Positions 1 through 50,922 of a stretch of 64,000 nt of DNA are shown piece by piece. Each line of letters starts with the position of its first letter. Position 1 is the stretch's first letter. The DNA comes from Bugula neritina (lineage: Eukaryota; Animalia; Bryozoa), in the NCBI GenBank assembly GCA_964035545.1, contig OZ037767.1:32256628-32320627 (forward strand), given 5' to 3'. A program made the position numbers and the translations under genes. Under the pieces are notes generated by a model that saw nothing but the letters and a program-made list of their open reading frames with translations, was not told the DNA's origin and made no database searches.

Positions 1-3000
1 ATGGGAGGGAACTACGCCTGCTCTGCCCACCCAGATGAATTCTACACCATACACTGGATAGACCCAGGTAAGATTGTCTGTCATTTTCTCTCTTAATTGT
101 AAGGTATTTGGGTGTACAGGTTATGCTGGTTAAAAGTTTACATGGACACAATATAGATGAAATATGTTCTTCATTGAGTACTCGATAAGTAGATCACTCA
201 AACTGTGTCACTCAAACTGTGTCACGCAGAGAGTGTCACTCAAAGGGTGTCACTCAAAGGGTGTCACTCAAAGGGTGTCACTCAAAGGGTGTCACTCAAA
301 GGGTGTCACTCAAAGGGTGTCACTCTGTAACCTTCTCTGAGTTTCCTGTCAACTCTTTGCTCATGTCATGTGATTTACAGTTGCCTTAGTTCCACAAAGT
401 ACAGACTTTAGCCGAGACGTTTATGGAAGCAACCTTAGATTCTACTGTTCAGTGGATATGACTCCAACTGACATCAGCTACTCTAAGATTATGAGTGTCG
501 TCTGGTAATGTCATGCTTACCTGTATAGTACAGTGTGTATGTATGTGACAGTGTGTGTGTGTGACAGTGTATGTGACAGTGTGTATGTTACAGTGTATGT
601 ATGTGACAGTGTGTGTGTGTGTGTGACAGTGTGTATGTGACAGTGTGTGTGACAGTGTGTATGTGACAGTGTGTGTGACTGTGTGTGTATGTGACAGTGT
701 ATATGTGTGACAGTGTGTATGTTACAATATATATGTGTGACAGTGTGTATGTGACAGTGTGTGTGTGTGTGTGTGCGTGACAGCGACTGTGTGCGTGACA
801 GCGATTGTGTGCGTGACAGCGACTGTGTGCGTGACAGCGACTGTGTGCGTGACAGCGGCTGTGTGTGTGTGTGTGTGTGTGTGTGTGTGTGTGTGTGTGT
901 GTGTGTGTGTGTGTGTGTGTGTGTGTGTGTGTGTGTGCGTGTGCGTGCGCGTGCGCGTGCGCGTGCGCGTGCGCGTGCGCGTGCGCGTGCGCGTGCGCGT
1001 GCGCGTGCGCGTGCGCGTGCGCGTGCGCGTGTGTGTGTGACAATATATATACATGTGACAATATATATATGTGTGACAGTATATGTGACAGGCATTGGAA
1101 TAGTGCCAAGACTCAAGGAAACTGGGCAATTCTACAGAATAATATCAACGGAGTAAAATATCAGACTGACTCTTTTGGTGCCAACTCAACTCTGGTCATA
1201 TCTAACTACAACCCAATACAACACGGTGGTGAATACAGATGTACTGTTAATATACTCAGATATGCTGATCCACTCGAAAGTACATCTTTCAGCATTCAAA
1301 GTTAGTAACAGTACTCACTATTTATTATATATTACTACTATATGCAATATATTACTACTATATGCTATATATTACTACTATATGCTATATATTACTACTA
1401 TATACTATATATTACTACTATATACTATATATTACTACTATACGCTATATATTACTACTATGCGCTATATATTACTACTATATGCTATATATTACTACTA
1501 TATGCTATATATTACTACTATATACTATATATTACTACTATATACTATATATTACTACTATACGCTATATATTACTACTATGTGCTATATATTACTACTA
1601 TGTGCTATATATTACTACTATATGCTATATATTACTACTATACACTTTATATTACTACTATACGCTATATATTACTACTATGTGCTATATATTACTATTA
1701 TACACTATATATTACTACTATATACTATATACTACTACTATGTGCTATATATTACTACTATACGCTATATATTACTACTATACACTATATATTACTACTA
1801 TACACTATATATTACTACTATATGCAATATATTACTACTATATGCTATATATTACTACTATATGCTATATGTTGCTACTATACACTATATATTACTACTA
1901 TACATTATATGTTACTACTATGTGCTGTATATTACTACTATATACTACTACTATATGCTATATGTTACTACTATATGCTATATATTACTACTTTATACTA
2001 TATATTACTACTATATGCTATATATTACTACTATATATTATGTATGTCTTGCAGGCCAGCCAAAGGCACAGCTAACTAACGACAAAAGGGATTCCTTTGA
2101 TTTTGGTGTCACTGAAGAGTTTAAAATTACTTGTTACGCCGAATCTTACCCATTTCCTAGTGACATCGAGTTTAGAATTTATACCGAGTCAATAACTCGT
2201 GACCATCCCGGGATAAAGGACTTCAGCGTAGACACTTTGTCTCTAAATGTGAAGAGACATTACGCTACCTTCACTGTGACTAATGCAACTAGTAAGTGTT
2301 GAATACAACCGTTGACATGTTGAGTACATCTGTTGATATGTTGAGTACATCTGTTACTATGTTGAGTACATCTGTTGACATGTAGATATGTTGAATACAA
2401 CTGTTGATATGCAGGTGTGTTTCCTGTCAACAACTCAATGATAGAATGTATAGTTACCAGACCTGATGGAGAGGAGAACCTGGCACAAACCAATGTCTCT
2501 CTGTTTGAAGTTACTCCTCCTGTGACAGCCACGGATAGCCCTGTGAACCCAAATGTTCGGCCCAGACAGGGTAGGCTATGTTACCACCCCTAAACTATAC
2601 TAGTCTGTACTATCACACTGCTATACTATATACTGTACTGTTATACTCACGTACTCAGACGAATGGGACAACGGATCTTCTTGTTTATCACAGAAACGTA
2701 CAATATATCTCTATAAATCTGTTCCCTAACTTTGTATGTTAGAGTCAGAAATATAATTCATAACTTTATAGTCTTTAGTTAAGCTGACTATTTTTCAATC
2801 ATAAGGAATACTTGTCAGAAAGATATCAAATGACACAAGAGTAACTTTTTATCTTTACTTTATATCCATATTGCAAAGGCAGGTCTCCAGTGACTAGCTA
2901 GCTGATAGTATAGTTGAATAAATCAGTTATATTGTAACTATTACATCTATCTGTCTATAGAGATAGTCTGCTATATCTATAGATACTCTGCTATATCTAT

Positions 3001-3656
3001 AGATACTCTGCTATATCTATAGATACTCTGCTATATCTATAGATACTCTGCTATATCTATAGATACTCTGCTATATCTATAGATACTCTGCTATATCTAT
3101 AGATACTCTGCTATATCTATAGATACTCTGCTATATCTATAGATACTCTGCTATATCTATAGATACTCTGCTATATCTATAGATACTCTGCTATATCTAG
3201 AGATACTCTGCTATATCTAGAGATACTCTGCTATATCTAGAGATACTCTGCTATATCTAGAGATATTCTATTGATAGTTATACTATGACACAGTATCTAT
3301 TATACTATGGCATAGTATCTAATATATTATGACACAGTATCTATTATATTATGACACAGTATCTATATTATTGTTACTGTATGACAGGAGTTGTCCAGCC
3401 TTGGGTAATTGTCCTTTCTATCCTCATCCCGGTGGTAGTCATAGCAGTGCTAGTTGGCGTTCTCGTGTGGAAGTTCAGAAGTGACGGTGGCCATAACAAG
3501 GGGGGTGAGTAACAGTAACTGTATCTGTAGCTAACACTGGTCACTGAATCCATTTACAGCATATTCCACAGCCTGTTTCTCCAATGTTACACAAGAATCT
3601 CTCCTCGTTTGTTTACAGCGTACACATTAGGGGACACAGATGACCCCGATGCTTAA
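1..3656 (+). CDS. Ig-domain type I transmembrane receptor, paralog A (short tail; 5' end outside window). Exons <1-68, 381-504, 1092-1300, 2055-2291, 2415-2570, 3388-3504, probably 3619-3656
   Basis: GT-AG introns with matching phases. Ig motifs LRFYC...VVWHW...STLVISNY...HGGEYRCTV and [11 protein letters not shown]...IECIV. TM segment WVIVLSILIPVVVIAVLVGVLVW, tail KFRSDGGHNKG-AYTLGDTDDPDA*. Last exon is less certain (alternative acceptor at 3560). Confidence 0.85.
530..1090. repeat. Compound (GT)n / GTGACA / (GCGCGT)n microsatellite in an intron of receptor A
   Basis: Directly visible; source of spurious ORFs at 517-1305. Confidence 0.95.
1320..2040. repeat. 20-bp minisatellite (TATGCTATATATTACTACTA); mirror copy at ~6795-7465
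   Basis: Tandem units visible. Confidence 0.95.
2960..3265. repeat. 20-bp minisatellite AGATACTCTGCTATATCTAT
   Basis: Near-perfect tandem units. Confidence 0.95.
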
Positions 3657-50600: not shown

Positions 50601-50922
50601 TGATATTCAATAGTCATATCCAACACTGCATTATTCACATATTATATTATATTATATTATTAACATCCTGGCAGATATGGAATGCAATTTAGGAACTTAG
50701 TTCACAGTTATGTGTGACTAAAATAACTGTTACAACCACCTAGCATATTTGTTGTACCTTTTGGCAGAGAGGGCACTTGTACTTGCTGTCAGAGACTGGC
50801 AGGTTGTTTAGACACTCCAGGCAAAGTGTGTGCTGACAAGGTAGCTGCTTCTGAGTCACCTTTTCCTCAAGACACACTTTGCATTGCAACATATTTTTTA
50901 GCTGACCTGCTATATTAGCCAT
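41655..50922 (-). CDS. RING-HC, coiled coil, four HERC2/KEG-type SH3-like repeats, CaaX; E3 ligase paralog E (~568 aa). Exons 50922-50758, 50543-50420, 49774-49707, 49623-49323, 48973-48813, 48553-48393, 47577-47448, 47259-47056, 46770-46674, 45115-44917, 43194-43114, 41670-41655
   Basis: Collinear with paralog D, same intron phases; RING CKVC...KQLPCQHTLCLECL...KCPLC; repeats VGEKVWVSLGVEEPVRGWCGVSHLSVG...VNFPECTDWKGLVSEVERL; 1707 nt in frame; ends SQQQCQTQ* (unspliced alternative stops at 43104). Confidence 0.85.
41865..44895. repeat. 15-bp array TATATAAACTAGTAA (41865-43105) and 29-bp array CTATTGCTATAGTAAACATATTATAACTG (43195-44895), flanking an 81-nt exon
   Basis: Tandem units; the first explains the poly-YITSL ORF. 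Confidence 0.96.
45155..46017 (+). mobile_element. 5'-truncated Penelope-like retroelement (GIY-YIG endonuclease C-terminus, Naiad-like) with an inverted 5' segment, antisense in an intron of paralog E
   Basis: 45242-45601 translates ATVETTENERATYIGLSERPFKLTYANHKSSF...TELSKYIWQL...ISWKILRKAKPY...KRCNLCLWE...LNKRNNLLSTCRHSKKFLL; 45155-45241 on the minus strand encodes the preceding CNC...CPLKRNCQKSKVLYQ (one frameshift). 3' boundary approximate, ending at (TA)n. Confidence 0.85.
45844..45894 (+). ncRNA. Degenerate minimal hammerhead ribozyme in the 3' region of the Penelope-like element
   Basis: TATTGTG-a-CTGAGGA-GTGC...GCAT-AAAA (GAAA mutated)...GTA-GCACAATA; stems I and II pair. Confidence 0.55.
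46157..46201 (-). ncRNA. Minimal type I hammerhead ribozyme (mirror copy, on the host pre-mRNA strand)
   Basis: Reverse complement of 46237-46281. Confidence 0.8.
46237..46281 (+). ncRNA. Minimal type I hammerhead ribozyme
   Basis: GAC-CTGATGA-t-CGTAG-ctcgca-CTACG-t-GAAA-CAATATTG-TA-GTC: intact CUGAUGA/GAAA/UH core, stem II, self-complementary stem III. Confidence 0.82.
46885..46964. mobile_element. 80-bp mini inverted-repeat element
   Basis: Perfect 16-bp TIR GAGTAAGCCTAGGGCC / GGCCCTAGGCTTACTC; no clear TSD. Confidence 0.5.
47600..48385. repeat. 13-bp minisatellite GTAATGTGACATA
   Basis: Tandem degenerate units filling an intron. Confidence 0.92.
49790..50320. repeat. 33/36-bp minisatellite GAGGTTACTATTCATATAGTCACAGTATGATATCATATA-type
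   Basis: Tandem units; explains ORFs 49668-50347. Confidence 0.93.

Follow-up and report, generated by a model that had tools for sequence, protein, structure and literature searches.

Paired Ig-like receptors, a TRIM-like SH2 gene and two RING-repeat genes in a subtelomeric block of Bugula neritina chromosome 3: five neighbors that are probably independent

The window analyzed here, a 64,000-nucleotide stretch of chromosome 3 of the bryozoan Bugula neritina (positions 32,256,628-32,320,627), carries five consecutive predicted genes, denoted A to E in their order. A and B encode receptors with Ig-like domains, C encodes a putative RING-type ubiquitin ligase with an SH2 domain, and D and E encode two related putative RING ligases with a C-terminal cysteine box. 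A preliminary description of the region had combined these genes into one recognition module. All five were located, with some corrections, and we consider it moderately likely that they are real, lineage-specific and probably independent genes that share a repeat-rich subtelomeric stretch. The module itself received no support beyond adjacency in any test run, and is neither shown nor refuted.

Genomic neighborhood of the five genes

About nine genes make up the D/E family, spread over some six sites in the genome. At three other loci of this family, inspected over 30 kb on either side, the D-like genes are complete, and no A/B-like or C-like exons were found. Similarly, no family member apart from D and E has one of the genome's 51 Pfam SH2 matches within 170 kb. 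The RING exon of C, in turn, has its nearest relatives in a chromosome 5 family (49-64% identity) and not in D and E. The absence of exons resembling A, B or C from the inspected D/E loci, together with the chromosome 5 affinity of the C RING, favors independence. At the DNA level D and E can be aligned at the RING exon alone (78% identity), and hence their duplication is old. Since they are old paralogs from a dispersed family, their presence in the block is explained by tandem duplication.

The block sits in a minisatellite-rich subtelomeric region, with the window 97-161 kb from the chromosome end. Tandem arrays scoring at least 400 cover approximately 20.5 kb (~39%) of the first 52 kb of the window. 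Within positions 1-52000 nearly every intron has a minisatellite of its own, built of 13-52 bp units in arrays of 0.3-2.2 kb. Subtelomeric regions of this kind tend to be rich in young, lineage-specific genes. In the gaps between genes A to E, a Pfam scan of open reading frames (ORFs) revealed no further domain-bearing ORF. The underlying assembly, tzBugNeri2.1, comprises 216.00 Mb in 320 scaffolds plus the mitochondrion, with nine chromosomes, of which chromosome 3 spans 32.42 Mb, and has 20,264 protein-coding genes (PMC11480708).

Several observations weigh against independence. B and C are divergent, with 3.55 kb from ATG to ATG, an arrangement compatible with a shared regulatory region. 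The tyrosines of the B tail fall into YxxP motifs non-randomly (p about 0.003), which argues for a genuine SH2-type docking site needing a reader. In Mind bomb, repeats of the type found in D and E bind receptor tails (PMC11887331). Finally, an SH2 gene between a tyrosine-tailed receptor and RING ligases is uncommon by a rough count, based on 51 SH2 exon matches, or an estimated ~45 SH2 genes, among 20,264 genes (PMC11480708). At most one case of an SH2 gene beside a tyrosine-tailed Ig receptor is expected by chance, the gene-class frequencies being our own estimates, and RING ligases flanking as well would be rarer than the SH2-receptor adjacency alone.

The full module would unite receptor B, a decoy A, a phosphotyrosine-directed ligase C and the membrane ligases D and E in a single immune or self/non-self pathway. 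The architectures of all five genes match the description, B. neritina is a colonial animal (PMC11480708), and REP-type repeats such as those of D and E can bind receptor tails. However, the other D/E-family loci lack such neighbors, tandem duplication of old dispersed paralogs suffices for D and E, and the combination was assembled post hoc out of thousands of windows. We regard the full module as extremely improbable; the receptors themselves, considered next, contribute evidence on both sides.

The paired receptors A and B

A and B are predicted to be single-pass type I receptors with three Ig-like domains. Six-frame reading and exon comparison show a common 8-exon plan with phase-1 introns; the two genes are inverted duplicates, placed tail-to-tail. 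The Ig-like assignment is based on the motifs LRFYCSV...VVW...GEYRCTV and LSYICRE...GNYACSA, which provide the B- and F-strand cysteines and the tryptophan. For all spliced gene models, domain searches were made exon by exon, so split domains were scored by halves, and every Ig-like domain of A and B is split by an intron. The scores against Pfam ig and Ig_3 (E=0.07-0.13) are below the cut-off. Further weak matches are to Dscam Ig3 (E=0.009) and to IgG and Fc-receptor chains (E=0.4-0.6), none at a curated threshold; all weak matches of the A and B exons are Ig proteins. The intron between exons a and b of B is 11.3 kb long and contains several minisatellites. It also includes a 1.8-kb impure (TA)n tract with a GC content of 9% (10548-12393).

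The two copies combine near-identity with strong divergence. In exons c-f they are 97.8% identical, with 7 synonymous and 10 non-synonymous changes (rough dN/dS ~0.5), and the non-repeat intron within the homogenized tract is 93.8% identical. Because the exons are better conserved than the introns, both copies look constrained and functional. By contrast, the protein identity in exons 0, a and b is 46-50%, as against 94-100% in the rest, and these three exons show no match between A and B at the DNA level. The transmembrane segments are related, with 38% identity. Gene conversion probably keeps domains 2 and 3 near-identical, the divergence being confined to the membrane-distal domain and the tails. 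Such a divergent tip is the expected look of a diversifying ligand-binding domain, a point in favor of the full module.

The tails differ as the preliminary description had stated for a receptor with 13 tyrosines and its short-tailed twin: the B tail contains exactly 13 tyrosines, and the A tail, read to its in-frame stop, has 13 amino acids. A further exon of A is possible in view of a GTGAGT donor at 3506-3507. The B tail has no paralog elsewhere in the genome, and the transmembrane segment of A is uncharged. In the B tail, YxxP is enriched relative to shuffled sequences (p=0.0025), and a scan for motifs revealed no immunoreceptor tyrosine-based inhibitory, activation or switch motif (ITIM, ITAM, ITSM) and no YxN or YxxM. 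None of its 13 tyrosines is followed by a hydrophobic residue at +3. With five YxxP motifs and one NPxY, the B tail resembles a substrate of tyrosine kinases and a docking site. The absence of ITIM and ITAM speaks against the full module.

Paired receptors such as KIR, SIRP and PILR provide the closest parallel in organization, being neighbors with near-identical membrane-proximal domains and very different tails. A and B differ from them in the absence of ITIM and ITAM, in a short-tailed copy without a charged transmembrane residue, and in the divergence of the membrane-distal domain. The preliminary description had also invoked the clustered Alr receptors of Hydractinia, whose complex comprises 41 genes and whose Ig domains escape standard profiles (10.1101/2022.03.04.482883). 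The Ig-like domains of A and B escape standard profiles too, whereas the family in the entire genome of B. neritina consists of two genes and one fragment. The likeness to Alr does not extend to a clustered family, which again counts against the full module. The fragment (locus L006, positions 717-1646), 19-20 kb before the window, contains the 3' half of exon e and intron DNA from between exon f and the transmembrane exon, at up to 97% identity, and lacks both exon f and the transmembrane exon. A reverse-transcriptase-like ORF (L006:1-693, minus strand) adjoins it.

Gene C, a TRIM-like gene with an SH2 domain

Gene C had been described as a RING-B-box-coiled-coil-SH2 gene head-to-head with the receptor. 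The RING, the SH2 domain and the orientation stand, and the B-box is degenerate and below the Pfam threshold. All nine exons are open, with good GT/AG sites. The N-terminal RING is of the C3HC4 type (C-x2-C-x11-C-x-H-x2-C-x2-C ... C-x2-C) and spans exons 1 and 2; its first half matches Pfam at 3e-5. The B-box-like stretch of 45 amino acids in exons 3 and 4 is Cys/His-rich and intron-split, with several His ligands replaced by Cys, and matches zf-B_box at E=0.18 over profile positions 8-26 only. It is followed by approximately 120 amino acids of charged, heptad-like coiled coil in exons 4 and 5, judged by eye, and by two linker exons. In the SH2 domain, the N-terminal half scores 31.1 bits against PF00017 (30.9 in the genome scan; cut-off 21). 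Against the Protein Data Bank, the SH2 domains of Abl, SHP2 and Grb2 are matched at 3e-5 to 1e-4, with the N-terminal half closest to Abl. The C-terminal half is assigned to SH2 by language-model features (Atlas; 0.93, 27 of 30 matches), and is closest to Shc-like SH2 domains (50% identity over 38 amino acids) and p85.

C is a single-copy gene. In the B. neritina genome, the N-terminal half of the SH2 domain has a single match, an SH2 exon of 40% identity on chromosome 4, and the C-terminal half has none. At least six RING exons with 49-64% identity to the first exon of C lie on chromosome 5 (0.55-2.02 Mb), and this clustered TRIM-like family may be the source of the N-terminal half. A search of the C-terminal SH2 half against 1.84 billion representative proteins returned two spurious repeat proteins only, which shows no more than that this library contains neither the gene nor a close ortholog. 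The best outside match to the SH2 domain is a Shc-like PTB-SH2 gene on the eukaryotic metagenome contig Ga0157364_1000833 (locus L033). This gene was rejected as an ortholog and is retained as a lead on the class of the SH2 domain. The contig is AT-rich and also carries an Nfu gene, and the ending VLxLRYPIPRH of its SH2 domain is shared with gene C.

The surroundings of C have some further features. A six-copy 52-bp tandem array (24626-24939) abuts its ATG. The protein ends in LPCLKK (29885-29899), with a cysteine four residues from the end, which may be a coincidence. C and D converge, their stops being 634 bp apart (29897-30534). The only ATTAAA of D is at 29927, 28 nt from the C stop, and C has neither AATAAA nor ATTAAA within 800 nt; the 3' untranslated regions of C and D probably overlap.

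In terms of function, C would be a TRIM-type E3 ligase in which the usual C-terminal substrate-binding domain is replaced by SH2, and some tyrosine-phosphorylated protein would either be ubiquitinated by C or recruit it. Both the ligase activity and the phosphotyrosine binding are predictions from the domain content. Full-text literature searches revealed no description of a TRIM-SH2 protein. The combination of a phosphotyrosine reader with E3 function is known from Cbl, SOCS-box proteins and Hakai, which ubiquitinate phosphorylated receptors or kinases (PMC3507883); C would resemble them in this respect. The arrangement differs in each case. Cbl has a 4H-EF-SH2 tyrosine-kinase-binding domain N-terminal to the RING, whereas the SH2 domain of C is canonical and C-terminal, and no exon of C matches Cbl_N, 4H, EF-hand or SOCS_box in Pfam. 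SOCS proteins recruit a cullin via the SOCS box, whereas in C only ~20 residues follow the SH2 domain. Hakai reads phosphotyrosine with a dimeric zinc domain instead of SH2. The order RING, B-box-like finger, coiled coil and C-terminal substrate-binding module is that of the TRIM (RBCC) proteins, from which C differs in its sub-threshold B-box and in having SH2 in place of the PRY-SPRY, NHL or COS-FN3 modules.

A more limited alternative concerns B and C alone. In this case the phosphorylated YxxP tail of B would recruit the SH2 domain of C, and C would ubiquitinate one of the six tail lysines and down-regulate B as Cbl does, D and E being unrelated neighbors. Apart from the head-to-head position, 3.55 kb between the ATGs, this scenario is favored by an SH2 domain that retains the FLVR arginine and passes Pfam. 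Its N-terminal half is closest to Abl, a member of the YxxP-preferring class, and the B tail has five YxxP motifs. Cbl and Hakai demonstrate that the design of a phosphotyrosine reader with a RING works (PMC3507883). However, adjacency is the sole link between the two genes, the block contains no kinase, and the pairing is not replicated elsewhere in the genome. Much of SH2 specificity is set by the C-terminal half, and the Shc and p85 classes, nearest to that half of C, prefer a hydrophobic residue at +3, absent from all 13 B tyrosines; this is weak evidence. On balance, a functional B-C pair seems unlikely, and independence of the two genes remains the preferred explanation.

It is also conceivable that one or more of the five genes, most of all C and the short-tailed A, are not functional as modeled; they would then be subtelomeric duplicates in decay and without expression, or exons wrongly joined. 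The library search for the C-terminal SH2 half, with no homolog among 1.84 billion proteins, and the degenerate B-box of C are consistent with such a fate, as are the repeats in almost every intron and the receptor pseudogene fragment 20 kb upstream by the reverse-transcriptase remnant. Yet the nine exons of C are open and phase-consistent with good splice sites, the exons of A and B are better conserved than their introns, and D and E have retained open frames and the positions and phases of their splice sites despite ~50% protein divergence. We find this explanation quite unlikely.

The RING-repeat genes D and E and the significance of the locus

D and E both encode a full N-terminal C3HC4 RING (Pfam 1e-7 and 3e-8), followed by a linker, a coiled coil and four repeats. 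Their splice sites were set from the positions conserved between the two paralogs. The proteins are ~50% identical, most junctions agree in splice position and phase, and the frames are open. Against Pfam SH3_15 the repeats score 23.1 and 20.7 bits (9e-5 and 5e-4), just below the 24-bit cut-off. A repeat profile built from four family members matches HERC2 (9l8y_A) at 3.3e-12, and Atlas also supports the REP type. The count of four repeats follows from the exon alignment. An AlphaFold model of a single-exon repeat, made from a four-sequence alignment, had a mean predicted local distance difference test score of 45.8 and was discarded. Canonical Mib-like genes are present elsewhere in the genome, on chromosomes 2 (15.97 Mb) and 6 (11.40 Mb). 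Chromosome 2 also carries a cluster of four genes of the D/E type.

The C-termini of D and E are encoded by separate mini-exons of 16 nt. In the last large exon, an apparent stop overlaps a conserved phase-2 GTAAGT donor, preceded by CA in D and by AA in E. Downstream, each gene has exactly one acceptor, after which come one base, a Cys codon, three codons and a stop, giving the ends QCESQ in D and KCQTQ in E. The paralogs on chromosome 3 (23.4 Mb) and chromosome 1 (2.99 Mb) have the same arrangement and end in CPTQ and CATQ. The box is thus found in four of the four family members examined (CESQ, CQTQ, CPTQ and CATQ), each time as the sole candidate downstream of the donor, so the C-terminus is conserved as C-x-[S/T]-Q. 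In D and the chromosome 3 paralog, the box comes after a stretch of basic residues. Aliphatic residues are absent from the two middle positions of all four boxes (ES, QT, PT and AT), and none is a textbook CaaX. Of the earlier claim that two RING proteins end in prenylation signals, the RINGs and a conserved Cys box are borne out, and the canonical CaaX is not. Farnesylated proteins with non-aliphatic CxxQ or CxxS boxes are exemplified by yeast Ydj1 (CASQ) and human DNAJA2 (CAHQ). The D and E boxes resemble these in the Cys at -4, the final Gln and the small polar residues between them, with prenylation predicted for D and E. The C-x-[S/T]-Q end and the preceding basic stretch would give these proteins a farnesyl membrane anchor.

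D and E can be described as RING-REP ligases, probably lipid-anchored, with the ligase activity predicted from the RING. They share REP-type SH3 repeats together with a RING with Mind bomb 1/2, HERC2 and plant KEG. Unlike these proteins, they show no match to MZM (MIB/HERC2 + ZZ), ankyrin repeats, HECT or a kinase in any exon. They also differ from Mind bomb in having an N-terminal RING and no C-terminal RINGs, then a coiled coil, and a Cys box encoded by a separate mini-exon. The repeats would serve as peptide-binding modules. In Mind bomb, the REP domain has as its target a short box within the JAG1/Delta cytoplasmic tail (PMC11887331), which makes action of D- and E-type ligases on receptor tails at the membrane a fair guess, but only a guess.

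Table 1. Coordinates of genes A-E and their parts. Positions refer to the window unless L007, the sequence before it, is named.
Feature	Position	Strand	Remarks
Receptor A	ATG L007:7590, 2.4 kb before the window; stop 3510-3512	+	exon-by-exon match to B
Receptor A, exons 0 and a	L007:7590-7707 and L007:9062-9222	+	before the window; signal-peptide exon present in both copies
Receptor A, exons b-d	b ends 75; c 374-505; d ~1108-1302	+	collinear with B
Receptor A, exons e-g	e ~2055-2299; f 2408-2570; transmembrane exon g 3388-3509 + stop	+	collinear with B
Receptor B	5369-21383; ATG 21383, stop 5371-5369	-	collinear with A
Receptor B, exons 0-c	0 21383-21257; a 20783-20640; b 9306-9133; c 8108-7977	-	
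Receptor B, exons d-g	d ~7680-7488; e 6797-6540; f 6194-~6032; g 5907-5369	-	g: transmembrane segment, tail and stop
Receptor B, cytoplasmic tail	5369-5830	-	152 aa, 13 Tyr, five YxxP, one NPxY, six Lys
Homogenized tract	A 248-2650; inverted partner in B 5950-8234		blastn 90-93% DNA identity
Gene C	24938-29899; ATG 24938, stop 29897-29899	+	nine phase-consistent exons, coding sequence 1341 nt, 446 codons
Gene C, exons 1-5	24938-25079; 26008 (or 25990)-26178; 26376-26460; 27875-28016; 28393-28666	+	
Gene C, exons 6-9	28912-29016; 29097-29172; 29300-29419; 29674-29899	+	
Gene C, SH2 domain	29300-29899; phase-2 intron 29420-29673	+	exons 8 and 9; FLVR arginine (GAFLVRSS) in exon 29300-29419
Gene D	30534-39548; ATG 39548	-	RING, coiled coil, four HERC2-Mib-type SH3 repeats, CESQ
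Gene D, exons, 5' part	1 39548-39378; 2 from 38836; 3 to 36105; coiled coil 34764-34560; 34475-34339	-	
Gene D, exons, 3' part	33229-33069; exon 7 within 32132-31902; 31773-31573; 31425-31329; 30929-30752; mini-exon 30549-30534	-	
Gene E	41655-50922; ATG 50922	-	paralog of D, collinear
Gene E, exons, 5' part	1 50922-50758; 50543-50420; 49774-49707; coiled coil from 49623; 48946-48813	-	
Gene E, exons, 3' part	48553-48393; exon 7 within 47609-47241; 47259-47056; 46770-46674; 45115-44917; mini-exon 41670-41655	-	

Beyond the block, the upstream neighbor of receptor A is an ALG3 mannosyltransferase gene (L007:2001-4112, minus strand; Pfam 4e-18). On the other side, two adjoining long ORFs of 493 and 198 amino acids lie in different frames at 53380-55391 (minus strand). 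Their sequence is partly minisatellite-encoded, and they contain no Pfam domain beyond repeat-driven pentapeptide matches.

Taken to its end, the joint mechanism would have B phosphorylated at YxxP, read by C and cleared with the farnesylated RING-REP ligases, with A as a decoy, in bryozoan self/non-self recognition or immunity. We consider this chain of events very unlikely. The value of the locus at present is that of three separate gene-level leads, with no demonstrated module. A literature search found no molecular basis of kin recognition or allorecognition in bryozoans, and hence a paired Ig-like receptor combining a tyrosine-rich tail with a divergent tip can reasonably be taken as a candidate. 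In D and E, the pairing of Mind-bomb/HERC2-type repeats with a farnesylation-type box suggests membrane-resident ligases for receptor tails.

Both the TRIM-like SH2 protein and the RING-repeat ligases with a farnesyl-type box represent new versions of protein kinds already known. If expressed as modeled, C would be a TRIM-type ligase reading phosphotyrosine with a canonical SH2 domain. If this is true, C would add to Cbl and SOCS a third way in which animals couple tyrosine signaling to ubiquitination.

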